Shown piece by piece: positions 1,972-51,906 of a DNA stretch of 51,906 nt. The DNA comes from Octopus bimaculoides (lineage: Eukaryota), in NCBI RefSeq assembly GCF_001194135.2, contig NC_068991.1, forward strand, positions 887,021 to 938,926, written 5' to 3'. The notes beneath the pieces were generated by a model, which saw only the letters and a list, made by a program, of their open reading frames with translations, ran no database searches and was not told where the DNA came from. A program made the position numbers and the translations under genes. The stretch's first letter is position 1. Each line of letters opens with the position of its first letter.

Positions 1972-2088
1972 CTCGTCATCTTCAAAATCGAGACGGATAT
2001 CTTCTTCTAAAAAACGTTTGGAAGGCAGTTCATCTTGAGGAAATATATATTCCCAATTGGTGCCATCATTCAGATCGTACTGCATCTT
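1972..2088 (-). CDS. DRC7: DRC7 coding exon 7 (absent from the ORF track); gene continues left of the window
   Basis: 117 bp, phase 0/0: KMQYDLNDGTNWEYIFPQDELPSKRFLEEDIRLDFEDDE (cf. DLIFDLGDPVRWEY). ttgcAG/GTAGGT. Confidence 0.9.
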
Positions 2089-2361
2089 CTGCAAGAATTT
2101 TAAAATTCATCACAATCAACTAACTTTTCTCCACACAAGAACTGAGCGATAGAAAATTCTTAAAACATCAATTTCTGTGTGACTGTTATTAAGAATTTAC
2201 AATGAAAAGTGTTAGCTTGCTCGTCTTCGTCAGATTGTCTGTCGAAGAAGTCAAAGCTTCGAACTCACTATTAATCTCTTCCTCTTCAAAAAAGTATTGA
2301 GAGATCCTTCAGTTTCATGCTAAGTTGTTTTGATATATACAACTTGACACAAAAACAAAGA

Positions 2362-2482
2362 TTAAGAAGGAGGGACTGACCGACCGACGGATGGACGGAG
2401 GGAAGGATGGACGGAGGGGAGGATGAATGGGTGGAAGGAAAGACGGACGGACAAATCGATAGTTAGATAGATCGATCGATCG

Positions 2483-2537
<55 letters not shown>

Positions 2538-2700
2538 CAAATGGATAGATAGGTCTATCGATAAATAGATAGATAAATAGACAGACAGACAATACAGACA
2601 GACAGATCAATCGATCGATAGATAAACAGACAGACAGACTGATCGATCGATCGATAGACAGACAGATAGATAGATAAATTAGATAGATAGATAGATTCTA
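2362..2700. repeat. Compound tetranucleotide microsatellite (GGAC/GATA/GACA/GATC)n
   Basis: Direct inspection. Confidence 0.95.
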
Positions 2701-3059
2701 TCACTATGTATAGAATGCAAACACGTTCTTTCTGTGCCACAAAAGAGACAGAAAGTGTCTTGACTGACAGTTTCACCGTTCGTTAACCGCTTCTCAGAGA
2801 AGGCGTAGCCATGTTCGTTTCTCAACTAACAGCATGGGTCAGCTCTTATAGAAACAATTTAATGAATTAGGCCAGAACATTAGCAGATAACTTAATTTGC
2901 ATCTTAAAACTTTTGATAGCTTGTCATTAAAATAGATATTGCATAAAATAGATATCATTTCATTAATGACGAGTCGTCAAAAGGACTAATATGCAGATTA
3001 GGTTATCCATTAATGTGCTAGCCTAATTTTTGACTGCTATATGTATGTGCGCGCGCGCG

Positions 3060-3110
<51 letters not shown>

Positions 3111-3786
3111 NNNNNNNNNNNNNNNNNNNNNNNNNNNNNNNNNNNNNNNNNNNNNNNNNNNNNNNNNNNNNNNNNNNNNNNNNNNNNNNNNNNNNNNNNN
3201 NNNNNNNNNNNNNNNNNNNNNNNNNNNNNNNNNNNNNNNNNNNNNNNNNNNNNNNNNNNNNNNNNNNNNNNNNNNNNNNNNNNNNNNNNNNNNNNNNNNN
3301 NNNNNNNNNNNNNNNNNNNNNNNNNNNNNNNNNNNNNNNNNNNNNNNNNNNNNNNNNNNNNNNNNNNNNNNNNNNNNNNNNNNNNNNNNNNNNNNNNNNN
3401 NNNNNNNNNNNNNNNNNNNNNNNNNNNNNNNNNNNNNNNNNNNNNNNNNNNNNNNNNNNNNNNNNNNNNNNNNNNNNNNNNNNNNNNNNNNNNNNNNNNN
3501 NNNNNNNNNNNNNNNNNNNNNNNNNNNNNNNNNNNNNNNNNNNNNNNNNNNNNNNNNNNNNNNNNNNNNNNNNNNNNNNNNNNNNNNNNNNNNNNNNNNN
3601 NNNNNNNNNNNNNNNNNNNNNNNNNNNNNNNNNNNNNNNNNNNNNNNNNNNNNNNNNNNNNNNNNNNNAATGGAGCAACAAATACAAGAAAAAGCATTTT
3701 CGTTGGACTAGATAGCCGTTGTTTTATTATGTGGAGTTTGTGAAATGAGTCAGTGTGGAGGTTTATCGAGGCAAACCTACCACTTA

Positions 3787-3833
<47 letters not shown>

Positions 3834-5250
3834 GTGTGTGTATATAGCAACACGGAAATCGGAGATTTTGCTCCGCCTACGACTTTCTGCCGCAACTACA
3901 GTTTAGCCAAGTTGGTAGGTTTCACTGTTGATAGTCACCAGTTTGGCGAGTGATTCGTATTGATGAGAAGAATTGTGGTTGACGTAATACTGGGATAGAA
4001 GAGAGAAAGAATAAACATCCAAATTATTTAATCTCGCTTAAAGAATAAATATTCTGACTCACAACGGATCCGTGATTAAGAACAGTAAAAGAAAATAATA
4101 TTTAAACAGAACAGTGACATTATGAATAAATATACAGAAAAGAAAAATCCATAGACATTGTCAGTATTTACATACAGCAGAAGATAAAATGTCCGATAAT
4201 TGAGAAGCTGAAGAAAATTGTTGCATGTCACAGAAAGAACATTCGCAGACAACAAACAAAATTACGTATTGTGGAGGAGAAAATATGAGTATGTAGTGAG
4301 GACGAATCAGATGCGGAAAAGACAAGGATTGTTTGAGTAAATCCCGACTCTAAGTTTTGTTCTGAAAATGGGTTTTTCAAACAAACTGGACACAAACATT
4401 TCACTGAAAGAAAGGGCACAGACGGATGCTGACTGGCTGATTATTTCTGCAGTGTGTTGTCCATGATTTGGAATAACACCAAACTCGAAGTCATATGCCT
4501 GACCAATTGAACAAACGATGTGGCCGAGGTGTGTCACAAGCACAGATATGTGCTGATGCGAATGAGTGAATGTATTTCACTGTGGGTGTAGTAAACAGAT
4601 GTAAGACTTAAAAACATAGAGTAATGTGTGCGTAAAAGTTTTAGTGAGAGACAGAATAATGTGTTTGTATAACTGTATTCGTGAAAGAAAAATATTAAGA
4701 TTTACACTATAAAATATTCATAGAATATTCAAAGCACTTACAAAAACAAAAGGAAATTTTCAAAGAAATGCCATTTATAGAAAGAAAAAAAACATTCAAC
4801 TTATGGGGAGAAAAAATTCTGTAGTAGGTATTTCTTTAGATGACGACATTTCGAAATGAGCTCAATCCTAGAATATAATCTAAGACTTGCATGATAACGC
4901 TAATCTAGGACTTGTATGGTGACGTTAATCTGTAGAGATGTCTTTCACGGTGACGTTAATCTGCAGGGAAGTACGATTTACCCAATCAAGAACCACCTAA
5001 CATGTTTCTCTTAGTTTTTTCATCCCTTACTCCTTCCACCTTATTCTTTACCGTTGTATTTCCCCACACTGTAACATCCAATAGATTCACCCAACAACTG
5101 CCAACAAGACAGGATGGCCACAACCTGGATGTCTGATCGGGAGTAGCCAAGAGTTGACTGTATTCCCGTGACCACAACATAAAATAATCAGTGAACAAGT
5201 AACGACTGCATTTCTACTTGTCCACCCCACTGTATACAATGAATACTAAC

Positions 5251-5469
5251 CGAAATTCCATTTGAGCAGTCTTGCATATTAACCCAGTAATTCTTGTGAT
5301 TCCATGCCGATTCTATGCCAAGGTAGCTGTCTGTCTTTAGTGGTTGCGCCTCTCCTGTGAAGGGTTCAATGAAGAAACTCTCGCCCACTTCTCGTATCCC
5401 TGACAACACCAACACCCAGCTGTGAACGCGCATCCCTCGCATCAAGTCAATGGCTGGCTCTTCAAGTTT
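5251..5469 (-). CDS. DRC7: DRC7 coding exon 6
   Basis: KLEEPAIDLMRGMRVHSWVLVLSGIREVGESFFIEPFTG...LGIESAWNHKNYWVNMQDCSNGIS. gacAG/GTTAGT. Confidence 0.97.
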
Positions 5470-6135: not shown

Positions 6136-6294
6136 AGCAATCCGAGCGTGTTCTTCAGCAACAACTTTTTCTTCATTTTCCTTCTTCTCTTTCAGAGCTC
6201 GAGCCACTTGTTTGGCTTCAAATTTACTGGTCAAATCCTTCGGCGGTCGTACAGCATACTTCTTTATCACGTTTACTGGCACTGGCAGCTCAAC
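6136..6294 (-). CDS. DRC7: DRC7 coding exon 5
   Basis: VELPVPVNVIKKYAVRPPKDLTSKFEAKQ...EEHARIA (cf. KKYTIKPPRDLCSRFE). gatcAG/GTAAGT, phase 0/0. Confidence 0.95.
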
Positions 6295-8184
6295 CTGATC
6301 GGAATTAATACAATCAATTACCAGACGTGCATGATGGCATAAAGAAAGCAATTGATATCGTATTGGACATGACTGGCATGCATGATATCACAGACCAAAT
6401 ATACACAGCAGACAGAGGCATGTTAGATAAATACACCATATCACAGATACAAGACATCGAATCAGATACAGCAAATATGTATGATATTAGATAAGATGTA
6501 TTAAACATGAATGTTTGTACAGCGGGGACATCAAACATCCGTTATTGTATTTACTATACCAGATACACATCTATATCTGTCACAGCAGACATATATATAC
6601 ATATAACATTATATCTACCAAACCACACACACACACACATATCATAACAGACATGTGCATATATGTATGATATAACTACCATACCATTACATGTATATAC
6701 GTATAAGTGTATGTATGTATATATATATGCATATATGTATATATGCATATATGTATATATGCATATATGTATATATATATATATATATANNNNNNNNNNN
6801 NNNNNNNNNNNNNNNNNNNNNNNNNNNNNNNNNNNNNNNNNNNNNNNNNNNNNNNNNNNNNNNNNNNNNNNNNNNNNNNNNNNNNNNNNNNNNNNNNNNN
6901 NNNNNNNNNNNNNNNNNNNNNNNNNNNNNNNNNNNNNNNNNNNNNNNNNNNNNNNNNNNNNNNNNNNNNNNNNNNNNNNNNNNNNNNNNNNNNNNNNNNN
7001 NNNNNNNNNNNNNNNNNNNNNNNNNNNNNNNNNNNNNNNNNNNNNNNNNNNNNNNNNNNNNNNNNNNNNNNNNNNNNNNNNNNNNNNNNNNNNNNNNNNN
7101 NNNNNNNNNNNNNNNNNNNNNNNNNNNNNNNNNNNNNNNNNNNNNNNNNNNNNNNNNNNNNNNNNNNNNNNNNNNNNNNNNNNNNNNNNNNNNNNNNNNN
7201 NNNNNNNNNNNNNNNNNNNNNNNNNNNNNNNNNNNNNNNNNNNNNNNNNNNNNNNNNNNNNNNNNNNNNNNNNNNNNNNNNNNNNNNNNNNNNNNNNNNN
7301 NNNNNNNNNNNNNNNNNNNNNNNNNNNNNNNNNNNNNNNNNNNNNNNNNNNNNNNNNNNNNNNNNNNNNNNNNNNNNNNNNNNNNNNNNNNNNNNNNNNN
7401 NNNNNNNNNNNNNNNNNNNNNNNNNNNNNNNNNNNNNNNNNNNNNNNNNNNNNNNNNNNNNNNNNNNNNNNNNNNNNNNNNNNNNNNNNNNNNNNNNNAG
7501 GATGATAGAGATGTGGCCATCCTGATACAGGAACGCCTCTAGGGATAATCGAGGAACCCTATTGTCCGAGATTTCCCTGAAACCCCAGGGGCAAGTGCAC
7601 TCTCCAATTCCTTCTCTCCGACTCACAGGTCAACACTTAGAGAGGTACAATAATAATGATAATGTTTGTCTTGATAATAATGTCGGTTGTATTAATAATG
7701 TTGTTTGGTTTCTTATTCTAAATATTTGGCGCCTTCAATTCCGGAGGAAGAATAAAAATTAAAGCAGATTGAAATTCAACAAAGCTATTTCGCCATAGAA
7801 TTCCGGTTCTTTGTTTGGTTAAAGAATATTTAGTAGAAAATGAAATATTGTAAAATTGAGTTTGTTCTAAACCATCAAGTCACACACACACACACACATC
7901 TATAACTTATGAACTCGAAAGATACGCTTGTCTACATTTCAGCGGCAGGAGACAAGGCGGAGGGGGCGGGGCGTAGTTCGGGGTCAGCTTGAAAAGAAGT
8001 AAAGAATGAAGTGGAAGGGGGTAGACATTGGAAGTGAGAATCAGTGGAAGAGATGGGATAAGAAGGGATAAAATGGGAGATTTCGTGGGCGACGGAAACA
8101 AGACATGCATATGCAAACACATTCCCACGCAGATGCATTCGTCTAGCCACACACAGTCACACACACACACAGAAGGCAGCGAAC

Positions 8185-8320
8185 CGGCAGAATGGACTGC
8201 CCTCCGGACAAAATGTTAACGGCATTTCGTCCGTCTTTACGTTCGAAGTACAAATTTTGCCGAGATCGAACTTGTCTTTCATCCTTTCGGGGTCGATAAA
8301 ATAAGCACCCACCCCAACTC
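8185..8320 (+). mobile_element. SINE family B
   Basis: Same core as 1612-1790. Confidence 0.78.
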
Positions 8321-8344
8321 ACACAAACCCCAAAAATGCTCACG

Positions 8345-8686
8345 CTGTGCTGTAATTTAAAACCATTATTTCCAACCACAAGATTCCGAGTTCAGTCCCA
8401 GTGCGTGGCGCCTTGGGCAAGTGTCTTTTACTATAATCTCGGGCTGACCAAAGTCTTGTGAGTGGATTTGGTAGACGGAAACTGTATGGAAGCTTATATA
8501 TATATATACATNNNNNNNNNNNNNNNNNNNNNNNNNNNNNNNNNNNNNNNNNNNNNNNNNNNNNNNNNNNNNNNNNNNNNNNNNNNNNNNNNNNNNNNNN
8601 NNNNNNNNNNNNNNNNNNNNNNNNNNNNNNNNNNNNNNNNNNNNNNNNNNNNNNNNNNNNNNNNNNNNNNNNNNNNNNNNNNNNNN

Positions 8687-8717
<31 letters not shown>

Positions 8718-8930
8718 AAGTATATATGCATATATCTGTGTGTGTGACTTTGTGTCTATGTTTGTCCCCCACCACCGCTTGATAACCGGTGTTGGTGTAT
8801 TTACGTCCCCGTAACAGTTCGATAAAAAAGACCGCTAGAATAAGTACTAGGCTTTAAAACAAAATAAGTCCTCGGGTCGATTTCTTCAACTAAAACCCTT
8901 CAAGGCGGTGCCCCAGCATGGCTGCAGTGT
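8345..8930 (+). mobile_element. SINE family A, near full length, internal (AT)n with gap
   Basis: B-box-like GAGTTCAGTCCCA, CCTTGGGCAAGTGTC core; 3' half ends GGCGGTGCCCCAGCATGGC. Confidence 0.82.
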
Positions 8931-9094
8931 AAGATTACACACACACACACACACACATATATGTGTGTGTGTGTGTGTGTGTGCCACTCGAGGTAGCTCT
9001 TGGTTTTACTGTGTCACCCAGCTCCCTACATAGGCTTCCACAACAGACCCAAAAGCGCCGCCTGGGATGAACAGTCCCACCCCTCACTCCTTTC

Positions 9095-9220
9095 AGTTTC
9101 TGTCTACTAAATCCAACCCCAGGGCTATAATAAAAGCCACTTGCCCGAGGTGTCACGCAATGAGACTGAACTCAGACCCATGTGATTGGGAAGCAAACTT
9201 CTCATTGCACTGCCACGCCT
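9095..9220 (-). mobile_element. SINE family A, inverted relative to 8345 copy
   Basis: Reverse complement of the family A head. Confidence 0.78.
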
Positions 9221-9399
9221 TCACAATAGATCAAATATTTCCAACGCCCAGCTTTCCCGAGTGATCGACCCACGACTGCTAACGTAAAAGCTATGGAATT
9301 CCTGAATGATACAAGGGAAATAACTTTATTTGAAGAGTTGTTTCCCTTTATTGAAGTTTAAATCCCGTCCAAGTGATTGATTCTATTTAGTTTCTAGTT

Positions 9400-10000
9400 G
9401 TTTACACCCATGTCAACACCGATGAAGCGCTCCACCAATGACCGTCACCTCCTTTTACCACACAATGTACAGTCAAACTACATTTTTATTCAATACGATC
9501 TTATTCTCAAGCCATTAGTGTTGTATTGGTGTGAAAGAAGCTTTAAAGTTGGTTCACACCAAGCAACAGAGGGCGCTCGAGATGACGTAAAACAATGAAG
9601 AACGACTCAGTCGTGGGGTGTGGGAAAATAGGGCGGCGGAAGGGAAGACGGTGGCAAGTGCAATATTTTGGCCAGGTTATCAATTTCTACAACATCTTGG
9701 ACAGGATTGTCGATGCACCCCATGGCACAAATGTCAAACTGTGCCAGTTAACAATTGCTTCTGATGCAACCCCAACTTGCTTCATTGCAATAGACTGTTT
9801 AGAGTCCAGTTCGGTCCAGCAGTACATCAAAGTTACAAACCGTGTCAACAGCCGACGGACACCCGAGAAAAAACGAATCTGGTCTTCAGCTCCGACAGTA
9901 GTTGCAAATGGAACACCTCCACCTTCTTCCTTCAGGTACTGTCTCTTCTGATACTCAGAAGAATTGTGGTGGATCAATGCCAAAGATGCAACGAATCAGA
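9400..10000 (-). mobile_element. Second, more decayed Merlin-like transposase fossil (N-terminal part clearest, 9690-9940)
   Basis: EGRRWRCSICNYC, FFSG.R..LT..LMYCW, AIVNWH, DICAMGCIDNPVQDVVEID across frameshifts. Confidence 0.7.
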
Positions 10001-10526
10001 GATTGAGGAAGTCATGTTATTCACTAGGATTCGAATGTCACTCAGAATGTAATTCGTGTCAAACCATTAACAACAGTCAGTCATAAAGGGGTAGATTGGG
10101 CTTCGTCTGTACCCGTGTCGCTTTGGTAGCATGTGCTGCTCTTACACAATAAAGCAATTGGAGGCGCGGGAGGGGGGGATAATAAAGGTATAAAACAAAA
10201 ATTAGAACTAAATAGTTGTCCTTTTCCTTTCAAAAGAATTGTTAGCACTATAGAAGAGTGGCCCCGACTCACACACCCATGCTAGTCAGTAGATGGACAG
10301 GCAAGTCAGTGAAACCCACAATAAAAAATTTAAAAAAACCTTCCACATGTATAAATAAGTGTAAACTGTAAATCAGGTGTAGCGGGGGGGGGGTATCTAT
10401 CTATCTAATAAAACAACCAACCAACTGAATGAATGAAAATAAAACAAATTTTGAAATCTGAAATAAAATCTTCCTCAAAATTAATCAAAGAAAGTTGAAA
10501 ATAATGAAATAAAATGTTATTCAAAA

Positions 10527-11130
10527 GTGAACCATTCTGAAAGATGTTTTAGAATATTCCAAAAACATTCCTCTCCAGTTTCCCCATATTTTCCCCTCCA
10601 AACAAACTCATCCAGATGCAATTCAATCACATTTCTCTCTACTCCCATCATACTTTTGCATCTTCCCAGAAACATTTTCAGCTGGATTGGTAATACTCGT
10701 CAGTTACTGGATCCACAGTCTTCTTTTTAGGATTTGCTTTGAAATGGGAATACCATGGTTCGGCATCAATGTCAGTTATTCCATTGTATCCACTCCAACA
10801 ATCAGAATGGTTAGTCGTTCCTGGTTCTATATACTTACTGATAAGAGGGAGCAAAGTTCCAGAGGAATGACCATTCCCAAACACCAGAAATCCTATTGCC
10901 CCATCCTCCAAGAGTCCACTTCTCCTCTGCTATTCTGCCTCTATTATACTTTCTTTTGCAAATCAAAGATTTCCCTATTTCAACAATGTGCCCAACTCCT
11001 CCGACTTGGTAGGGTTTACATACAAGATGGAGACTTGTTATGTCTCACATGCATTGATACCACTGTGTCACTGTTGCATCTGAAAAACCTGCCACATCAG
11101 ACGAGATATTTATGGAGTCAGAAGAATAAA
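10527..11130 (-). mobile_element. Merlin (IS1595/ISXO2-like) DNA transposon fossil, catalytic and C-terminal part
   Basis: Across frameshifts: QVGGVGHIVEIG..KRKYNRGRIAEEKWTLGG, TLLPLISKYIEPGTTNHSDCWSGY, VDPVT, HLDEFVWRGKYG..FWNILKHL. Confidence 0.88.
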
Positions 11131-11169
11131 GTCTAGGAGTCTCAACTTAGAATTTTCCAGAAATGAAGC

Positions 11170-11350
11170 TTGTGCCAGTGGCATATAAAAACCACCCACT
11201 ACACTCTCAGAGTGGTTGGCATTAGGAAGGGCATGCAGCTGTAGAAACTCTACCAGAGCAGACTGGAGCCTGGTGCAGCCATCCGGTTCACCAGTCCTCA
11301 GTCAAATCGTCCAACCCATGCTTGCATGGAAAGCGGACGTTAAACAATGA
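11170..11350 (+). mobile_element. RTE-tail repeat (family D)
   Basis: GTGGTTGGCATTAGGAAGGGCATGCAGC..GGAAAGCGGACGTTAAAC. Confidence 0.8.
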
Positions 11351-12271
11351 AGTTTTTTTTACCAGACTTTTTCAATTTTGTGTGTAGCATGGAAAAAATC
11401 TTTCCTTGTATTTTATCAGACTCATTTCCTTATTGCAAGATTAAGTCTGGTGTTATAGAATTCAACACTTTGTTTCTCCTTTACAAATAAATATGCAGCA
11501 TCAAAACTGAGGGTTGTTTTTTTTTTGCAGGTGCCACTGACTTGCACAGGTGCATACACCCCTGACTAGTGCAGGTGCACACATCAGGGCCACTCTTAAG
11601 TGGTACCAAATTGTTTATTTTACAATTCAAATTTATTTTCAATTAGCTGCAGGCCATTAAAAAAAACAAAAAAACCTTGCATTTATTATTTTTAAATTTT
11701 AATCAATTACAAACTTCAAACTGACCAAGGTATACTATTTCAAATAGAAACTTCATTCCAACATTCTTTTACAGGTCCTTGTCCATAAGTTGTGGCCCAA
11801 GCTAGAGCAACTGTGTCTATTGTTTGAATATTTCTAAAATAGGTTAATGGAATTTAGTCAATGGGATTGAAGGCTTTATTTTTTGTTGACCGTAAAGAAA
11901 ACTAGGAAAATGGCACTAAGGATAGACTGCAAGAAAACCAGCAGTTGTGACCTTGGTAGCCTGGTGAGGAAAAGCCCAGCATGACAAATGGATTGAGGAG
12001 TGGATGGCCCCAGCAGGGAAAGCGTCAAGGATTCTGTAATAATAGTAATAGCAGCACACAGCAGGGAGCTGGTGACGCATGGAAAGCAACCATTATACGA
12101 ATACACACACATTATATATATATATTTATATATATATATATATACATACATATACACATAAACATATTTATATACATACAATTTTAGATACTAAATATAA
12201 AAACACACACATATATACAAAATGTTTATTGTATACATAGAATATTAACAAAATTTTTTTAATGTTTTGAT

Positions 12272-12763
12272 ATGTTGTCTACAGATGCATTTAATAAAAT
12301 ATACCAAAACGAGAAAGTTTTCACAGAACTTGTGGTCCCACGAGGACATTTAAATGTTACCTGGGTTAGAACTGTTTTTCAACGTGTTCGTAATCTCTAT
12401 AACAAAAAAAGTGGTGGGAGGGGGAATATCAGTCAATTTCAGGACGAACCAACAATGCGTTATATTAAAGCAGCTGTAGCTCCCTTAGATCACACACTAA
12501 TGCTACAAATAAAGGATACGTCAGAGCAGAATGCGAGGCTAAAGGGTCTCTGGCCAGAATTGATGAACAGAAACACACGATCGATTAATGAAAGACTTAA
12601 GGTTGCAGTAGAAGAGGAAGAAAGACAAGAAAAAAAACAGGAAATATTTGAAATGGGAATGAAAAATAGGTTTTTAAAAATGGAAATGAGAAATGGGTTA
12701 AAAGAAAAAAAAAAAATCACTGAATATTTTGTCGTGTGTGTGTGTGTGGTTTGCTCAAAATAA
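12272..12763 (+). CDS. Unidentified 163-codon ORF (possible terminal exon from acceptor at 12283-12284)
   Basis: Long stop-free frame in very AT-rich DNA with protein-like composition. tctacAG acceptor; AATAAA overlaps the stop (12759-12764). No family recognised with confidence. Confidence 0.4.
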   Translation: MLSTDAFNKIYQNEKVFTELVVPRGHLNVTWVRTVFQRVRNLYNKKSGGRGNISQFQDEPTMRYIKAAVAPLDHTLMLQIKDTSEQNARLKGLWPELMNRNTRSINERLKVAVEEEERQEKKQEIFEMGMKNRFLKMEMRNGLKEKKKITEYFVVCVCVVCSK

Positions 12764-12857
12764 AAGTAGATATCTATTTTGCAAAACTCTGTGAGAGGGA
12801 TTAAATACAAATGGTTTGGTGAAATATTTTAATCCACAACTGATCATTGCAGAAGAT

Positions 12858-14012
12858 TCAGAGGCTGTAATACTTCTCCACGTAATGAATGCATTCGAAT
12901 ATCACCTCAACTAAGATGAGAATTATAATCATCCATTCAAGACGAGTGTGGTGTTTGTCGTTGAGGTGACTGGACAAGAGTTCGGTCAACTCGCAGCAAT
13001 GTTTGAGTTTTTCGTTAATGACTTTGGTTCGACGGTTGATGCTAAGATAGTTAGCCATCTTCTGATAGAGGGGCTCCAGATTCTCGCGGTCCCAATAAAA
13101 GTCGGGGGTGTCCAACAAGTCTGAACTCAAATTAATTAAATGTCTTAATGTGAACAGTTCCCCGGTCATTCGGAGAATCTGGTCCCGGGACACACGGATT
13201 CGTTTACCCAGGCGAACATCTTCGATGACTGGCTCGATAGTATCGACGAATCGAACCAAAGACTCTTCCCAAATGGCTAACTTGACGGACAGCGAGAGGG
13301 CATTCGAAAAAGCATATTTCACGAGGGAATCGAACTGATCGGCGACGTTGATATGAATCACATCTTTCTCAAGACAAGTCTTACGGTCGGCACTGTAATC
13401 ATATTTCAGGCATTCGTTCTCGGTCAAATACAAAGACGAAGCGTAAGGAGAAGCCGAGTATTTCTCGATGGAATGTAGAACTTCATTCCTTTCGGTCACA
13501 GACATATTCCAAAAGACAATGGCACCTTCACGGAAGAGGAAGATCTCACGTTCTTTGTTGTCAATCTTGTAAACAGCTTTCAAATGAAGGCCATCGGTCA
13601 CATCTGTTGGTAAAGCCACCACTTCATACAGAGCTTGTTTCACGAATGCCTTCGACAATTCCTCCAGTCTGATATCCTCTGATATCGCATAAGCCACAAC
13701 ATCCAGTTTATCGACGTCAACAACTTCGACGTTTTTCTTTCGTGGAGTCATTTTACTTGTGAGTGGGGACACGGGTTTGGTCCTCGCCGCCGCCGCCCAT
13801 ACATTCGTTCGGTGGTGAAAAGCTGATCTAAAATTCTTGTTAATCCAACCAAATTTAAATAAATGTTCTTTGACAAAGTTCACAGGTTGAATAACTTTGC
13901 TTGTAAAGTCTGTTGGGCCACGGACGGAATGGTGCAGTGCCTTCTTACCGGGGGCTAGAAACGATCGACTCCTCCTTATTAACTGTAAAGGTCCCCTGGT
14001 GAAATTATTCAT
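12858..14012 (-). CDS. RMND1: Required for meiotic nuclear division 1 homolog (DUF155, mitochondrial inner-membrane protein), single coding exon, 384 aa
   Basis: Uninterrupted ORF with FLFREGAIVFWN, YAFSNALSLSVKLAIWE, LRHLINLSSDLLDTPDFYWDRENLEPLY and RLEWMIIILILVEVIFE. Basic N-terminus resembles a mitochondrial presequence. In-frame stop upstream of the ATG. Confidence 0.96.
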   Translation of the reverse strand: MNNFTRGPLQLIRRSRSFLAPGKKALHHSVRGPTDFTSKVIQPVNFVKEHLFKFGWINKNFRSAFHHRTNVWAAAARTKPVSPLTSKMTPRKKNVEVVDVDKLDVVAYAISEDIRLEELSKAFVKQALYEVVALPTDVTDGLHLKAVYKIDNKEREIFLFREGAIVFWNMSVTERNEVLHSIEKYSASPYASSLYLTENECLKYDYSADRKTCLEKDVIHINVADQFDSLVKYAFSNALSLSVKLAIWEESLVRFVDTIEPVIEDVRLGKRIRVSRDQILRMTGELFTLRHLINLSSDLLDTPDFYWDRENLEPLYQKMANYLSINRRTKVINEKLKHCCELTELLSSHLNDKHHTRLEWMIIILILVEVIFECIHYVEKYYSL

Positions 14013-14118
14013 GATGTTTTCTCTGTAGAAACCTTATTCAAACTGCTTGGGTCCAACATGTGTTATACGGTGGCTGACATTGTTAGCTGTTCGGCAGTTA
14101 ATCACAAACTCGGCTCTG

Positions 14119-14123
14119 ATTGG
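14119..14123 (-). promoter_or_regulatory. CCAAT box upstream of RMND1
   Basis: CCGCCAATCAGAG on the minus strand, about 110 bp 5' of the RMND1 ATG. Confidence 0.4.
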
Positions 14124-15328
14124 CGGAAATAAATATTTTAACTCTGTCATTTATACTTCTTCAGGCAAGTTGAATAAATTCAAAAGATTTTAATTAAAAA
14201 ATTATTTTACTGTAATATTTTTATAGAAATTAATTTATCATGATATATTTATAAATTTTCTAGATCCTTCTTGTTATTATAAATTAATTCGTTCGATAGA
14301 AAGAAGTCATTTTTCAATAAACCCATAGCTACGAGATGAGACTATGAAAGCGTCCTTAGCAACAACCGCTTTCGTCGTAAGTCGCCGGACTTCACCGTGT
14401 CCTGTCTTAAACAACTAACGGTGATGACAATGATGATTTTAGACTGACCCTTGATTAGAAACAGGGAATGTTGACGTCTTAGGAACACGTATTTGTACAA
14501 AATGTGGTCATGCTATAAACAATAATAAATTGTTTACAACAATTTTCTTTGTTTATTGTAGCATCGACCCAAGATGGATTTAAAGGCTGCGATAAGAAAA
14601 TGGAACTAAGCAGCACAGGTTTATTGAGGGTTTTGCTTTAAAAAGTTTCTCAAATACAGGTGTCAACGAATTCGTACAAAGAAAATAAACACAAATCAAT
14701 TACAACAAAGTTTCGAGATAAATGTGCTGCACGTGCAGTGTTGTGTATATAGGCGAGGGGTGAGCGCGCATGTATGTAAATGTGTGTTTGTATGTGTGTA
14801 TGTATAAACACGTGTTTGTGTATGCGTGAGACGCAGGAATGTGTTATACTGTGGGGCACCCATATACGAACGGTTCTCAAAATAAACAAATTGTGTAAAA
14901 AACAGTTTGACTGAAGAAAAGTATATTCACCCAACAAACTGAAATTTGAACAGCAAATGACGACAAGACTTCGCAGACATGCAAGGGCCAGGAGAGCCCA
15001 CACGAACGGCTTCTTAACTCCCATCTAGGCATTTCATGGGGATTGCAAATTTCCAACGTTTATATAGAAAATATTTTTCTCATTTTTTAAATTAAAAACA
15101 TAACCCCATGGATTGACAGAAGGAAAAGCAAGCACACACACACACACACACAATTAAAACTAAATGTGAGAGTTTGTCTTGCAACTCATGTTTCACACCA
15201 GCGTGATCTTAGTGAAACTCGAGGTGTGACACAAACTCTCACATTCAGATTTAATAATAATAAAACCATATCCTCTTCAACATGTATTGAGTACTTCTTT
15301 CTCATTTGAGCAACATTAAACAATGAAC

Positions 15329-15395
<67 letters not shown>

Positions 15396-15424
15396 NNNNN
15401 NNNNNNNNNNNNNNNNNNNNNNNN

Positions 15425-15460
<36 letters not shown>

Positions 15461-15809
15461 CCACCCACATGCACATATATGTACATACATGTATATATGT
15501 AAGCATTTGCTATTGGTGAAAAGATAAATAAAACATTTCATTGTTTTATGCAAAATTTGGAATGGATTACTCCTATTTTACTCATTGACACAATTTGGTT
15601 AACGAACTGGGCTACCCCAGGGTATACACATGGTAGAAATAGTGAGGTGTGTGGTAGGGTAGTGTTGTATCTATATCGTCTGTATACATTATAGAACACT
15701 TTCAAAGACATGCTGAAGGACGATTGTGCTTGAAACGGTTTGATCTTAGGTCTACTGGATCAGGACTGACCCAGGGTTTTACTACAACAATAACAACAAT
15801 AATACATAC

Positions 15810-16004
15810 CTCTGCCTCCGTCTCCAGGTAAGGACAGATCTTGAGAGTCTCATCTGCTGAACAGACATGCAACGTCGCATAACCACTGACAATATAAGCA
15901 TCGTAACCAGCCCCCAGCAGCAGGGAACACAAAATGGTGCAGTATTCAAAACAAGTTCCTCTCTGGCGTCTCAGAACTGTTGTCGGAGACAAAAGGGTTG
16001 CTGG
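15810..16004 (-). CDS. DRC7: DRC7 coding exon 4 (transglutaminase-like domain, Cys motif)
   Basis: PATLLSPTTVLRRQRGTCFEYCTILCSLLLGAGYDAYIVSGYA...ETEAE. ttttgcAG/GTATGT, phase 0/0. Confidence 0.95.
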
Positions 16005-16620: not shown

Positions 16621-16746
16621 CAGTTCATATGAAGGGTAGAGCATCTCTGGCTGAAGATAATCACTAACAAACAACGAAATGGTGTGCCACTGGTAGAGTT
16701 CCGGGTAAGGAAACAGGGTTGGTCGAATTGTTGTACACACCAGTTT
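16621..16746 (-). CDS. DRC7: DRC7 coding exon 3 (absent from the ORF track)
   Basis: 126 bp, phase 0/0: KLVCTTIRPTLFPYPELYQWHTISLFVSDYLQPEMLYPSYEL (cf. KFVSTTLRPTLMPYPELYNW..FVSDFL). cAG/GTAAGG. Confidence 0.95.
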
Positions 16747-16859: not shown

Positions 16860-17028
16860 TTCCACACCACACTCATTTTTTGGGAAGAGCAACAATGGTT
16901 TCCTATCACGATATAAGTAGATATATTGGCGTCGGAAGTTGTCTGCATATTCCAAGACCTTCTTTTCTTTTTCTTCATTCTGTTTGTAACTGAGAGGAAA
17001 TTCAATTCTCGAGAGATCTTCCAGTTCT
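16860..17028 (-). CDS. DRC7: DRC7 coding exon 2
   Basis: ELEDLSRIEFPLSYKQNEEKEKKVLEYADNFRRQYIYLYRDRKPLLLFPKNECGVE resembles vertebrate DRC7 LPISYKTN..ADNFSRQY..PLNEC. Acceptor ttttcgcAG, donor GTAAGT. Confidence 0.95.
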
Positions 17029-19084: not shown

Positions 19085-19239
19085 AGACACTCAGTCAGCC
19101 CAGATCAACATCACAACACACACAGAGTGGGATGGAAGACACAAAAAGTAAGATTTTAATAGAGTTCATTCTCTTTATTCATTTTTAACTTTGTATTCTG
19201 ATGTATATGTACATACACACACACACACACATGCATATC

Positions 19240-19271
<32 letters not shown>

Positions 19272-19420
19272 CATGCATGCATGCACACACACAAATGTAT
19301 GTAAAGCTATATATATATATATATGTATGTATATAATTAATAATAAAAGGGTAAAATTAATTAATTAATCAATTAGTTAATAATTTTACCAAGTAGTTTG
19401 GTATGTTAAAATAACCTTTA

Positions 19421-19462
<42 letters not shown>

Positions 19463-21589
19463 ATGTATACATATACATACACATATATATGCATGTATGT
19501 CGATATGTTGTCAGTGGATTTGGTAGATGGAAAGTGAAAAGTAGATGTTTAATCAATGATGAGGGTGATGAGGATGATATAGCTGTTCCCCTCATCATAT
19601 GTCCCCCTCTTTCATTACCATGTCTGTAAGAAAAAACTCTCTCTCTCTCCTAGTTTCCTTTGGTTATTCAATCCCTTTGTAAGCCCTTGAGCTTAGCAAG
19701 TTACAAAGTGACCCACTAGTGCTGGTACCACAAAGAAAAGTACCTACTGCACTGTTGGTGACATGAAGAGCGTACATTTGCAAAACCATTGCAAAACAGA
19801 CATTGGAACCTGATACAGTTGTTCAACAGGTTTGATCCTGTCAAACAGAAGAGTAACCCTTAGTCCCAGATGAATGGCTTAACTGTTTATTTAGATACAT
19901 GAAAGAATCAAGTCATTGAATGAAACTACCCAAAGCCCCTATGATGGTCCTGGTATGGCTATGAAGGTGATGACATGTCAGAATCAGCAGGTGTTGGTCC
20001 TCATTGTCACACTGAAGTTGTTGTTGTTGTTACTGTTGTTCATAGCCTGGACCTTGCTGAATCAATTCAACCATCCTAATGGCATTTGTTCACCAGAATT
20101 GTCTCTTTTCTTTGTCCACAGAGGACACGTCCCCAACAGGGGCCTCTGTCTCTTTCCCATGAAGGACCCGGCCACATTCAAGAACCTAATCATCTCTGAT
20201 TCATGGTGGTTAGCAATGGGAGTTACAACTGTGTCATGTCCTTTTGTTCCCTGGTTCAGATTTGAACCTGTCATCTTGATGTTGTCAGTTGACAGGAAAG
20301 AGAAAAGGAAAATGTGCAGCAGACCAAAATGGCAGGTTGACATTGCGACATAGCTTCCACTCGTGGCTGGCTTCCATTTAAGGCCTGGTGAAATTCATTC
20401 CCAGTGACCAGTTGTGGCTTGTATATACGAACACACACACACACACACACACAAGTGAATTAACTAGTACCTGTGTGTGGGAGGGGTGGAAGAGAGACAG
20501 GAAGTTGTTATTTTCTTAATGTCAATCAAGAATAGAAAAGAGAATTAAGATGACATGGAGTGGGGGGTGGGAAGGGTTGGTTGCCTCCACCACCATTTTC
20601 TCTCTCTCTCTCTCTCCCTTTCTCCCTCCCTCCACCTTTGTCCGTTTGTACCCCACTCCCACCAACGCTGCTTCATGGAAATGAGGTGGGACACAAGAAT
20701 CAATATTATGGCAACTAGGAAAAGAAAAATATATTACAGAGAAGATGATGATGACGATGATGATGATACTTATCAAGTTGACAGTGATAATGATGGTTGC
20801 ATTGTTAGTGGTGGTGGTGGTGGTGGTGGTGNNNNNNNNNNNNNNNNNNNNNNNNNNNNNNNNNNNNNNNNNNNNNNNNNNNNNNNNNNNNNNNNNNNNN
20901 NNNNNNNNNNNNNNNNNNNNNNNNNNNNNNNNNNNNNNNNNNNNNNNNNNNNNNNNNNNNNNNNNNNNNNNNNNNNNNNNNNNNNNNNNNNNNNNNNNNN
21001 NNNNNNNNNNNNNNNNNNNNNNNNNNNNNNNNNNNNNNNNNNNNNNNNNNNNNNNNNNNNNNNNNNNNNNNNNNNNNNNNNNNNNNNNNNNNNNNNNNNN
21101 NNNNNNNNNNNNNNNNNNNNNNNNNNNNNNNNNNNNNNNNNNNNNNNNNNNNNNNNNNNNNNNNNNNNNNNNNNNNNNNNNNNNNNNNNNNNNNNNNNNN
21201 NNNNNNNNNNNNNNNNNNNNNNNNNNNNNNNNNNNNNNNNNNNNNNNNNNNNNNNNNNNNNNNNNNNNNNNNNNNNNNNNNNNNNNNNNNNNNNNNNNNN
21301 NNNNNNNNNNNNNNNNNNNNNNNNNNNNNNNNNNNNNNNNNNNNNNNNNNNNNNNNNNNNNNNNNNNNNNNNNNNNNNNNNNNNNNNNNNNNNNNNNNNN
21401 NNNNNNNNNNNNNNNNNNNNNNNNNNNNNNNNNNNNNNNNNNNNNNNNNNNNNNNNNNNNNNNNNNNNNNNNNNNNNNNNNNNNNNNNNNNNNNNNNNNN
21501 NNNNNNNNNNNNNNNNNNNNNNNNNNNNNNNNATGCATATACATACAGAAATATACATATTTATATTTATATATCTATGCATGTGCATA

Positions 21590-21757: not shown

Positions 21758-21882
21758 ATGGAAGGGTCTCAGAAGATAATCCTCTTCTGGATGCTGATGT
21801 CAGTTATGGTGATTCTTATCCCTGGACATCGGATCAACACAGCGTCAAATTTTTACCATTCTAGTATCATCGAAGATGAAAA
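21758..21882 (+). CDS. MCFD2: MCFD2-like secreted EF-hand protein, coding exon 1 (signal peptide)
   Basis: MEGSQKIILFWMLMSVMVILIPGHRINTASNFYHSSIIEDE: hydrophobic N-terminus. AA|GTAAGT donor, phase 2. Confidence 0.8.
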
Positions 21883-22842
21883 GTAAGTTGCCAACATAAC
21901 ACAAACACAAGCCTGATGGGCAAACAGGGTCAACAAATGGGATAACAAACGAGAAATAAATGGGAAAGCATTAGCACAACACAGAGATGACATAAATGTA
22001 AAAATAGTATAACCCTGGGGACATGTTATGGGGATAAAATGGGGAATGGGGTAACAAGATATTTTGGAGGTAAAGTTTGTAGGGGTCAGTTTGTATTGAT
22101 AACTTTTTATATCAACTAATATATTTTGGTGGGTTTCCATGTTGGTTATAAAAGTTTCATGGTGAAGAAGTGAGGTGTGTCAGGTGAGTGGAATATGGAC
22201 CACATGGATGTAGTGTGGATCACATGACCCACAGCACATGGATGTGCTGTGGGTCAATTAGCTATTGAAAGTGATTGTGGATTGCCTTCAATAAGTAATC
22301 AACTTCGTTTTACTTTGCCCCAGGATCGAAGGAAAGTATCATTGAATCACTGTTTTTGTGTCTCTTGACTGGAATTTCTCACAAATCTGTTTGCACTCTG
22401 CTCGACATCTACATGAGAAACGTCCACAGGATGAATTCTGCAGTATTACGGTGTTCTTATAATACATGCGTGCACACACACACACGTGTGCTAAGTCAGA
22501 CACTGGAGCTTGGCAAACTCCCTTGGCTTACCAGTTCCTATCAGACCATCCAGCATAGAAAACAGACATTAAATAATGATGATGATGCTGTATGTATGTC
22601 TATATATGTTTGTGTGTGTGCAAACTAATAACCTCTAAATTAATATCGGTTACCAGTCATATATCGAGATGTTCCATCCTAAATAATCACAAAGCATTTT
22701 TATTACAACTGTCACTAAAGTAGTAGTAGTCATAGTAGTAGTAGTAGTGGTGGTGGTGGTGGTGGTGGTGGTGGTGGTGGTTATGATGTTGATAACTAAT
22801 GTTGTTTTCACTGATGTTGTTGTTCTTGTTTTGTTGTTGCAG

Positions 22843-22926
22843 ACATATCAGAAGTCATTTACAAGAAATTACCAATATTGGCGAAAAGGAACTGAGTCCT
22901 GAAGAAATAGAATTCCATTTCTTCAA
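22843..22926 (+). CDS. MCFD2: MCFD2-like exon 2
   Basis: HIRSHLQEITNIGEKELSPEEIEFHFF(K), cf. MCFD2 HIMEHL..EMSPQELQLHYFK. ttgcAG/GTAAGA. Confidence 0.88.
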
Positions 22927-23214
22927 GTAAGATTAAATATAGTGAGTGTGCGTGTGTGTGAGTGTGTAGCATTTCTTTACTCTTTGTCTGCCACCAAGCC
23001 TAGAAAATCTTCCTCAGGAAACTCCCTCCAGCCCATGCAAGCATGGATAAGTGAATATCAAAATTAGGTTTCTGCTGCTGATGATGATGGTGGGGATATA
23101 CACAGCACCTATTATACAGACCAGTGTGTGGATCAGGTCTGTTCTATAGAATACCCCCCTTCCCCCACCGCCACCAAACACTCCTCTCACTCTTTCTTTC
23201 TTTCTCTTTTCCAG

Positions 23215-23399
23215 GTTACATGACTTAAACAATGACACGCTGCTCGATGGTCTTGAAATCCTGGCTGCCTTGTTTCACTCGCAGCCAACAGAAGACATAG
23301 TCCCAGGGCTAAGTGAACAAGAAATGAAACTCAAGTCCCGAGATCAAATCAAGAAGATCCGTAAAGAGAGGCAGGAGAAAGTGATTCATTATTATACAG
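23215..23399 (+). CDS. MCFD2: MCFD2-like exon 3 (EF-hand 1 plus insertion)
   Basis: LHDLNNDTLLDGLEILAALFH... (cf. [21 protein letters not shown]). ttttccAG/GTAATA. Confidence 0.9.
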
Positions 23400-23729
23400 G
23401 TAATACTACCACCACCACCACCACCAGCCTCACCGCTTGACAATCGCCTCCTAAAAATTTCCTGCGTATTATACTCAAGGGCAGACTATACTCGAGAATT
23501 TACAGTGTATATATATATATATATATACATACACACACACATATAAACTGATGATGATACTGACATAAATATCTGTATATACACACACAACACATTCATA
23601 TGCTTAATTTAGAGGAAACTAAAATTTCCGTAATAGTTATTCAGAATTCCTCATCATTGATCTTTAGCCAATTATTGGAAATGTGTGTGTATGTAACACT
23701 ATTGATTGATTTCTCTCTCTCTCTGACAG

Positions 23730-23878
23730 ACATAATCGATGAAGTCTTTGAGAAAGATGACCTCAATGATGATGGTTACCTGGACTACATGGAATTTACC
23801 AGAACTCACAGACGAAATCAGAGGAGATTCAGCACCCCACAAGAGAAAGAGATTCATGTCACCAAACCAAAACCATAA
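23730..23878 (+). CDS. MCFD2: MCFD2-like exon 4 (EF-hand 2, stop)
   Basis: DIIDEVFEKDDLNDDGYLDYMEF...KPKP*. Four exons total 543 bp = 180 aa. Confidence 0.9.
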
Positions 23879-41867: not shown

Positions 41868-43123
41868 TTGGGTCATCCCATAAATAATGCAGTTTTTTTT
41901 TATACTTCTTTATTTTTCAAAATTAACCTAAACAAAGATCTTTTTTAATCTAAAATATACCCACCTTCGTTTTCTACAATGTTCTTCCATCCGTTTGGTA
42001 GACTTGCAAGGCCCCTCTTCCAAAATTCATGATGAAAAATACTCCTCCACTACTGTTCTGACCTCGTCTACAGAATTCATATTTTTTCCGTCCAAATGAT
42101 TTTGAAGACTGCGGAATAAATGGTAATCAGATGGAGCAAATACCTGCGAATATGATGGGTGGGGCATCGTTTCTCATTCAAACTGCTCCAGCCTTGGAAG
42201 TGTCATCCTCACTGTATGTGGCTGAGCATTGAAACCATTCGTCCTGAAACCGAAGACGGTCATTTTCCTTCTAGCGCTGACTTAAGGCCGCTCAAGCTGC
42301 TCACAGTAGATCTCCTTTGTTATCACTTGGTTTGGATTCGAAAATTTAAAGTGGACTAAACCTTTTATATCCCACCAAACAGATAACAATACCTTACATG
42401 GGTGAAGACCTTCTTTAGCCTGGGGTGCCAGTGTTTCCCCTTTCTCTGCCCACTGTCTTCTGTGCTTGATATTTTTATAGAGAACCCATTTCTCGTCACC
42501 AGTCACTATTCAGTTCAAAAAAGGTTCATTCATGAGAAATGACAGCAAAGAAGAGAGCACACGTTCACTCTATGCGCATGACTAGAATCAGAAAGTTTGG
42601 GAGGAACCCATTGACCCAATTTACTGACTTTTCTGATGGCATGTAGGTGTCGATAAATGGTTGAACGACCAAATCAAAGCTTCTTTGCTAATTCCTCAAC
42701 AGCTACTTTGGGATTTTGTTCCACCAGAGTTTGCAGGACGTCCGCGTCGAGCTCTATAGATCTTCCAGAAGGAGGATCGTCTTCTAGGCTATACTTTCCA
42801 GCTCGGAATTTCTGGTACCATCGTTGACACTGGCTTACGCTTATAGTCCGATCTCCATATACTGCATTAATATTCCTCGCAGTTTCCGTTGCATTGTTGC
42901 CTTTATTGAACTCATAAAGCAAAATATGCCGAATATGCTCCTTTGTCACTTCCATTGAGGCTTTGAAAAAAAAGTGTTAAAATCGAACTTCACCCTTCAA
43001 AACTTGCACTAAGAATAAGTATAAGGTAAAATTACTAACAGCTTTTATAACAAGTTGATGCAGATAGTTTATCCCGTTCCCCTCCGACTTTTAGTTCATG
43101 CAATTGAAAAAAACCTGACCCAA
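41868..43123 (-). mobile_element. Mariner (Mos1/SETMAR-type) transposon, near full length, inactive
   Basis: HTH MEVTKEHIRHILLYEF..RWYQKFRAG, TGDEKWVLY, and YSQVFAPSDYHLFRSL, with stops and frameshifts. TTGGGTCA termini; TA at the right end. Confidence 0.93.
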
Positions 43124-51671: not shown

Positions 51672-51785
51672 TGGTCAGCCCAGGGTTATGGAAGACATTT
51701 GCATAAGGTGATCTACAGAAAGACTGAACCTGGCATCTTATAGTTGTGAAGCAAAGTTCTCTTAACCACACAGCTATGCCTGCAC
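51672..51785 (-). mobile_element. SINE family A head
   Basis: Reverse complement of the family A head, followed by (AT)n. Confidence 0.72.
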
Positions 51786-51786
51786 C

Positions 51787-51838
<52 letters not shown>

Positions 51839-51906
51839 TACAGCAATGAATTCTGGGTAGAGGTAGGGGTCCACCAAGGTTCCGTCCTCAGCCCCCTCTT
51901 ATTTAT

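Follow-up and report, generated by a model that had tools for sequence, protein, structure and literature searches.

How does a gene for a mitochondrial protein come to lie, without a single intron in its coding sequence, inside an intron of an unrelated gene, and how might it be expressed from such a place? This question is raised by a 51,906-nucleotide stretch of the Octopus bimaculoides genome (hereafter the window; GCA_001194135.2, chromosome CM046611.1, at about 0.89 Mb, with nine N runs that total 3,644 N), in which the gene RMND1 occupies an intron of the larger cilia gene DRC7. Our answer, to which we assign a probability of roughly 0.8, is that the RMND1 open reading frame (ORF) is a working gene that arose as a processed copy of a multi-exon molluscan RMND1 before the octopod split, and that it has replaced its parent. 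How the copy came to be expressed is a separate matter, on which our proposal is more tentative.

An intron-free RMND1 gene and its host

The initial annotation of this stretch described a complete 384-amino-acid RMND1 ORF without coding introns, flanked by DRC7 exons of the same orientation across an intron of about 9.5 kb. Both elements of this description are borne out by the following features, for which DRC7 exons were mapped by tblastn with DRC7 homologues from other animals.

12858 to 14012, minus strand: RMND1 coding sequence, one uninterrupted exon of 384 amino acids plus stop (ORF from ATG to TGA; Pfam match; substitution rates)
6295 to 15809, minus strand: DRC7 intron hosting RMND1, 9,515 bp including 913 N in three assembly gaps (splice sites, exon continuity)
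15810 to 16004, minus strand: DRC7 exon directly upstream of the host intron, 65 codons, phase 0 at both ends (splice sites; tblastn; tblastx, 88% amino acid identity to Argonauta)
6136 to 6294, minus strand: DRC7 exon directly downstream of the host intron, 53 codons (splice sites; tblastn; tblastx)
16860 to 17028, minus strand: DRC7 exon, approximate boundaries (tblastn with DRC7 homologues; acceptor and donor present)
16621 to 16746, minus strand: DRC7 exon, approximate boundaries (homologue search, tblastx)
5251 to 5469, minus strand: DRC7 exon, approximate boundaries (homologue search, tblastx)
1972 to 2088, minus strand: DRC7 exon, approximate boundaries (tblastx to Argonauta contig L002, 5142-5020; splice sites)

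The ORF matches the complete Pfam profile PF02582 (RMND1/Sif2-Sif3/Mrx10, DUF155; positions 1-174 of 174) with E = 1.4e-50 and 172 bits, against a Pfam cut-off of 27. In protein searches it is 94% identical to its counterpart in O. sinensis, 72% to that of Argonauta hians and 48-58% to those of other molluscs, and the best named matches, from molluscs and arthropods, are called 'required for meiotic nuclear division protein 1 homolog'. RMND1 is a mitochondrial inner-membrane protein required in mitochondrial translation. The full-length DUF155 domain and the hydrophobic C-terminal segment LEWMIIILILVEVIFECIHYV are common to the octopus ORF and to other animals, and the N-terminal 100 or so residues are poorly conserved in alignments even within cephalopods. 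Weak conservation of this kind is typical of targeting peptides. The predicted product is most likely a mitochondrial RMND1 protein that has kept both its domain and its C-terminal segment, and the Octopus gene differs from the rest of the RMND1/DUF155 family only in its structure, namely the lack of introns.

The coding sequence is under strong purifying selection. By the Nei-Gojobori method, the ratio of nonsynonymous to synonymous substitution rates (dN/dS) is 0.084 between O. bimaculoides and O. sinensis, at a synonymous rate (dS) of 0.34; comparisons of octopus RMND1 with a third octopod contig (SRR11869394) give 0.087 and 0.103, and those with Argonauta give 0.073-0.087, there with saturated dS (>2). 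All six octopod pairs thus fall at 0.07-0.10, far from the value near 1 that the initial annotation had named among the signs against a functional gene.

The nesting itself is equally clear. The splice sites ...cag| and |gta bound the exons at 16004-15810 and 6294-6136, and residues 163-227, ~228-280 and 281-352 of a Solemya DRC7 protein (P0121) align to 16004-15810, 6294-6136 and 5469-5254, respectively. Because the exons on either side of RMND1 encode consecutive residues, no exon is missing between them and 6295-15809 is a single intron. RMND1 and DRC7 both lie on the minus strand in O. bimaculoides. Assembly gaps at 15396-15424, 8512-8686 and 6790-7498 bracket the piece that bears RMND1, so that its orientation here could be a choice made in scaffolding; the gap-free locus of O. 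sinensis has the same order and the same-strand orientation, and confirms it. The arrangement is already visible in public gene models: a 384-amino-acid DUF155 gene is called within an 851-amino-acid DRC7 gene on the same strand in O. bimaculoides, the O. sinensis models likewise place a DUF155 gene on the DRC7 strand within DRC7, and the public DRC7 models of both octopus species span the nested gene. RMND1 is a nested intronic gene whose whole unit lies inside one DRC7 intron, the extent of its transcript being our estimate. Like other nested pairs, it consists of a whole gene in one intron of a larger, unrelated host, and the pair has been kept in both Octopus and Argonauta. In O. sinensis the homologous DRC7 intron has a length of about 10.6 kb, in Argonauta one of about 8 kb. 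A bivalve-like DRC7 locus (L007) has this intron with nothing in it and with a size of only about 0.7 kb. DRC7 exon fragments from metagenome assemblies were also tried as cephalopod outgroups; the best of them, from this same locus (protein P0189), was rejected, since it is closer to the bivalve Solemya than to octopus, and we kept the locus as an example of the empty intron.

Origin of the copy and fate of its parent

If RMND1 were intronless and at this position in all molluscs, there would be no retrogene to explain. We compared the RMND1 loci of a chiton (Liolophura), an abalone (Haliotis), a limpet (Patella) and a bivalve (Solemya), in which the gene spans 11, 16, 5 and 14 kb, respectively, with about 10-12 coding exons in each. 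Once an offset of 10-16 residues is allowed for, chiton and abalone have corresponding exon boundaries. In both of these animals the 10 kb on either side of RMND1 is free of DRC7 exons, and the gene lists for 10 kb around the limpet and Solemya genes hold other genes. The octopod locus, in a DRC7 intron, hence differs from that of all four orthologues, and Octopus RMND1 lacks every intron of the ~10-12-exon structure. The chiton locus (Liolophura sinensis, L004, at 2168-3933 and 19125-19625) has a peculiarity of its own, in that an upstream partial duplicate repeats the exons for residues 271-383, and a unit of about 19 residues (amino acids 343-361) occurs many times in tandem in both copies.

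The uninterrupted ORF is found in four genomic sequences, those of O. bimaculoides, O. sinensis, Argonauta hians and an 80-kb ENA contig (L003), and it is also intact in two short contigs of unclassified kind. A second deep intron-free lineage is made up of the L003 protein and two sets of transcript-like contigs; it is 62-63% identical to the octopods and 70-76% within itself, with a dN/dS of 0.12 inside it. Neighbour-joining places all intron-free genes in a single clade inside the molluscs (bootstrap 0.93), and the octopod and second branches within it have support of 1.0 each. Judging by sequence distances, the second branch would represent the Decapodiformes, and the retrogene origin probably predates the split between octopods and decapodiforms. 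Shared as it is with Argonauta and with this second branch, the event is old.

These data leave next to no room for the simplest objections, that the intron-free state is ancestral or that the ORF is an artefact of annotation or a processed pseudogene in decay. Nothing speaks for them beyond the bare absence of introns. Against them stand the multi-exon genes of four non-cephalopod molluscs, the corresponding exon boundaries of chiton and abalone, the placement of the intron-free genes in one derived clade, and an ORF that is intact in four genomic sequences and two short contigs at a dN/dS of about 0.08.

The suggestion of a functional retrogene, one that possibly took the place of its parent, is supported by this comparison. 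An intron-free state, a new locus, restriction to a single clade and purifying selection together indicate an old functional retrogene whose parent was most likely replaced. Retroposition would be the mechanism, and the parent would have been lost in octopus: among the 120 best protein matches there is one RMND1 protein per annotated octopod and no second one, and no further RMND1-like sequence occurs elsewhere in the window.

Several points weigh against this reading. The loss of the parent is judged from annotated proteomes, and the taxon of the second lineage from distances. No poly(A) remnant or A-tract was found downstream of RMND1, and no convincing target-site duplication; the direct repeats that flank the gene are AT-rich and weak, at 74-79% identity. 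In addition, no DRC7 exon was detected within 10 kb on either side of RMND1 in the second-lineage contig L003 (tblastn to E = 5), which thus does not date the nesting. The ORFs at the edges of this contig are repeat-derived and retrieved no unique protein. The missing marks of classical retroposition are nevertheless expected to have eroded at such an age, given that synonymous sites between Octopus and Argonauta are saturated (dS >2).

The absence of a visible poly(A) tail or target-site duplication would also be consistent with another course of events, in which the introns were erased in place by recombination with cDNA, with the native promoter kept, and the compact gene was later moved as DNA into the DRC7 intron during cephalopod genome rearrangements. 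Such a history would directly explain a CCAAT box that is shared with the chiton at the same spacing and lies upstream of the transcript start (see below). We regard it as unlikely. Two rare events are demanded where retroposition needs a single one, the recombining cDNA would have had only about 30 nt of first exon to work with, and the insertion of about 1.5 kb of DNA into an intron has no obvious mechanism. Moreover, a short and empty version of the homologous DRC7 intron exists in a non-cephalopod, and RMND1 lies away from DRC7 in chiton and abalone.

A retroposed copy that replaced its parent has precedents. Retrogene replacement and orphan retrogenes have been described for SYCP1 in amphioxus and RNF113 in mammals (PMC3548309, PMC5803294, PMC4772013), and ten families of orphan retrogenes are reported in mammals, nine of which seem to have gained broad expression through CpG-island promoters that evolved or were recruited (PMC4772013). 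Octopus RMND1 resembles these genes in having a single coding exon where relatives elsewhere have many, a new locus, purifying selection, no detected parent and a housekeeping-type role. It differs in that the copy apparently inherited about 100 bp of parental upstream sequence, whereas the mammalian genes mostly use CpG-island promoters. Our literature search found no paper linking RMND1 or cephalopods to an intron-free or retrogene state. The replacement of a single-copy housekeeping gene by a retrogene is rare, with few documented cases outside vertebrates and insects.

The upstream block and transcription of the nested gene

If RMND1 is expressed in its own right, signals for transcription should be sought in the intron around it. 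The initial annotation placed a CCAAT box at 14119, and such a box is indeed located there, at 14123-14119, as part of a longer conserved block.

14045 to 14145, minus strand: conserved upstream block, putative core promoter and start of the 5' leader (Octopus-Argonauta alignment; profile search)
14116 to 14123, minus strand: CCAAT box CCAATCAG, NF-Y type (CCAAT at 14123-14119), invariant in five cephalopod sequences
14063 to 14080, minus strand: start-site-proximal element ATGTCAGCCACCGTATAA, also readable as a mini-ORF, MSATV then stop; ATG(T/A)C.GC with TAA 4-6 codons on in all cephalopod copies

The local alignment of the block between Octopus and Argonauta scores 30, compared with 9.2 +/- 1.3 for dinucleotide shuffles, and none of 500 shuffles reaches that score. 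Its parts follow in the order TTTC..CCAATCAG (the CCAAT box), about 44 nt, ATGTCAGCC(A/G)CC.T.TAA and then CAC(A/G)TG, and both order and spacing are repeated in the two decapodiform-like genomic contigs. From six cephalopod blocks we built a profile and ran it against both strands of 147 kb of loci from molluscs other than cephalopods. The two best matches, in Liolophura (L004 7969-8034, E = 0.0098) and Solemya (L011 7854-7885, E = 0.017), both fall on the coding strand, some 2 kb ahead of the annotated start codon of RMND1. Chiton, abalone and Solemya all have the motif AAGATGTC(A/T)GC about 1.5-2.1 kb ahead of their first coding exon; in abalone it reads CCAAGATGTCAGC, about 1.5 kb upstream of the start codon. 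The CCAAT box of the chiton matches that of cephalopods in its flanks and in its distance of 43-44 nt from the ATGTCAGCC element.

Donor-like GTAAAT (chiton) or GTAAGA (Solemya) occurs within about 30 nt after the element, and a pyrimidine-rich AG stands just before the RMND1 start codon in chiton and abalone. From these signals, the element in chiton, Solemya and abalone would belong to, or adjoin, a short noncoding first exon, with an intron of about 2 kb between that exon and the coding ones. In cephalopods the distance from the end of the element to the ATG is much shorter, ranging from 51 nt in Octopus to about 70 nt in the decapodiform-like contigs. The intron in the 5' untranslated region (UTR) is thus missing as well, which is further support for an origin from mRNA.

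Transcript-like sequences suggest what the block may do. Five such contigs, from different runs of one decapodiform-like species, have 5' ends 76-93 nt upstream of the ATG, on ATGTC...GCCGCCATTT, about 40 nt past the CCAAT box. A longer contig of genomic appearance is colinear with them, and one of the five terminates in 17 nt of poly(A), 951 nt beyond the stop codon. The element would putatively mark the transcription start region, with the CCAAT box just upstream, and it loosely resembles the YY1 consensus, AAGATGGCGGC. As a mini-ORF it reads MSATV, MSATI, MTAAL or MSAAIY in cephalopods, all ending in TAA, and the start MSA or MTA is common to cephalopods, chiton, abalone and Solemya. Since the element stands at the very 5' end of transcripts, we consider this reading secondary; the conservation may be that of an upstream ORF or that of a start-site motif acting at the DNA level.

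The block appears homologous to the promoter and the first, noncoding exon that RMND1 has in chiton and Solemya, and we see about even odds that a parental promoter was carried over with the copy. On this basis we propose, at somewhat less than even odds for the whole chain, that the retrogene was born with a minimal parental promoter from a 5'-extended transcript, was self-sufficient, replaced its parent, and was later inverted within the DRC7 intron with both genes surviving. The source transcript would have begun upstream of the usual start site and so carried the minimal promoter with it. The resulting cassette would comprise about 1.3 kb or more, namely the upstream block of about 100 bp, a short unspliced leader (~50-70 nt) and the single coding exon. 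A carried promoter would explain how the copy could replace a housekeeping gene and function in either orientation in the intron.

What tells against carry-over is that it needs an unusual 5'-extended transcript, as a standard mRNA excludes a CCAAT box upstream of its own start. The profile matches give modest support, at E ~0.01. The Octopus block aligned to that of the decapodiform-like sequences scores 12, which 55 of 500 shuffles reach, and aligned to the chiton region it also scores 12, against a shuffle mean of 8.8, with 14 of 500 reaching it. Inheritance of a promoter from the parent is reported for about 3% of the retrocopies expressed in human and mouse (PMC4772013). The octopus copy is like these in its upstream homology, with the CCAAT box and start-site element in the same order and at the same 43-44-nt spacing as in the chiton. 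It is unlike them in age, since the mammalian cases have low divergence (dS 0.08-0.39; PMC4772013) and the octopus case would be far older, with similarity that is short and of E ~0.01.

The same-strand position of RMND1, 1.8 kb downstream of a DRC7 exon, invites a different account of its expression, in which Octopus RMND1 is expressed mainly from the DRC7 promoter, as an alternative terminal exon or through intronic polyadenylation of the DRC7 pre-mRNA. Chimeras with a host gene are a known route to retrocopy expression (PMC4772013), and an acceptor-like tttctacag lies 10 nt before the ATG. An octopod short contig (L006) that continues 444 nt upstream of the ATG also fits such an account, though it may be genomic. 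We nevertheless find dependence on DRC7 very improbable. Every cephalopod copy has the conserved CCAAT box and start-site block upstream of the ORF, transcripts of the related lineage start at the conserved element, and Argonauta RMND1 is equally constrained while antisense to DRC7. A stop codon 8 codons upstream of the ATG (7 open) precludes an in-frame DRC7 fusion, and a mitochondrial housekeeping gene would be ill served by a cilia-specific promoter. Octopus RMND1 would thus most likely be transcribed independently, from a start at about 14050-14090.

At the other end of the gene, the candidate signals for polyadenylation are as follows.

12828 to 12833, minus strand: ATTAAA, candidate poly(A) signal, 25 nt after the stop codon; ATTAGA in O. 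sinensis
12290 to 12295, minus strand: ATTAAA, alternative candidate poly(A) signal, 563 nt past the stop codon and conserved in both O. bimaculoides and O. sinensis
11875 to 11880, minus strand: AATAAA, 978 nt after the stop codon, conserved between the same two species
11632 to 11637, minus strand: AATAAA, 1,221 nt after the stop codon, conserved between the same two species

The first of these was put forward by the initial annotation and is present in O. bimaculoides. Decapodiform-like RMND1 transcripts have 3' UTRs of about 0.7-0.95 kb, and these long UTRs in a relative, together with the ATTAGA of O. sinensis, make the ATTAAA at 25 nt weak evidence for a poly(A) site. In decapodiform-like, genomic-looking sequence, an AATAAA and an A-rich run follow directly after the RMND1 stop codon (L012 2691-2721 and L008 1305-1335), and mature decapodiform-like transcripts read through this early AATAAA for another 0.7-0.95 kb. 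A 163-amino-acid ORF on the plus strand (12272-12763), antisense and just downstream of RMND1, was rejected as a chance ORF; it has no Pfam match and only 48% amino acid identity in O. sinensis, versus 80-86% for the DNA.

Two orientations in one host intron

Most reported nested genes are antisense to their hosts, and the initial annotation attached importance to the same-strand arrangement. That arrangement holds for O. bimaculoides and O. sinensis and is peculiar to the Octopus lineage; it is not fixed. On the Argonauta contig L002, RMND1 (10001-11134, plus strand) lies between DRC7 exons at 16386-16177 and 8209-8051 on the minus strand, the homologues of 16004-15810 and 6294-6136, and nucleotide BLAST likewise shows RMND1 antisense to DRC7 in this species. 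Within the same host intron, the guest is therefore sense in octopus and antisense in Argonauta. Because neither the O. sinensis nor the Argonauta locus contains assembly gaps, the flip is not a choice made in scaffolding.

In both Octopus and Argonauta, about 1.8 kb separates the start of RMND1 from the closest DRC7 exon and 5-6.5 kb separates the end of RMND1 from the other, distances that would fit an inversion of nearly the whole interior of the intron. When the Octopus and Argonauta introns were aligned for breakpoints, only exons, RMND1, microsatellites and dispersed repeats matched, plus the upstream block of about 100 bp. Same-strand RMND1 is one of two tolerated states and not a constraint. 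The initial annotation had also suggested that the poly(A) site of RMND1 could truncate DRC7 transcripts; as both genes persist in two Octopus species, and in Argonauta with RMND1 antisense, any such cost has been tolerated.

The public DRC7 call in Argonauta (527 amino acids, L002 8051-19143) starts at the exon just after the RMND1-bearing intron. Three well-conserved DRC7 exons lie upstream of it, at 16386-16177, 17840-17670 and 19143-18982, and the nested gene appears to be where the model was broken off.

Other sequences in the window were noted in passing. Just upstream of DRC7 and divergent from it, a public gene call of 180 amino acids without a Pfam match occupies about 21758-23878 on the plus strand. 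At 42285-42976 on the minus strand lies a remnant of a Mos1/mariner transposase split over two frames, with HTH_48 (E = 4e-24) and a partial DDE Transposase_1 (E = 2e-19). Open frames at 51728-51904 and 1352-1666, both on the plus strand, resemble fragments of reverse-transcriptase ORFs of the long interspersed element (LINE) type (e.g. ...HQGSVLSPLLF), and CA/TA simple-sequence repeats are abundant throughout.

Considered as an RMND1/DUF155 gene, an orphan retrogene or a nested gene, octopus RMND1 is a case of a known kind, a clear example that introduces no new principle. What raises it slightly above a routine retrogene is the flip of orientation within one host intron and the apparently inherited promoter. 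The retrogene has endured in stable form for a long time, and its success may be explained by the upstream block that it retained. Its presence, position and orientation provide a compact marker for cephalopod phylogeny and genome rearrangement. In addition, Octopus and Argonauta form a pair with a sense and an antisense guest in the same host intron, in which interference between transcription units and the suppression of poly(A) sites in introns could be tested. Should the gene indeed have been born with its own promoter and later been inverted, these two animals would constitute a natural experiment on what a same-strand guest with poly(A) signals costs its host.

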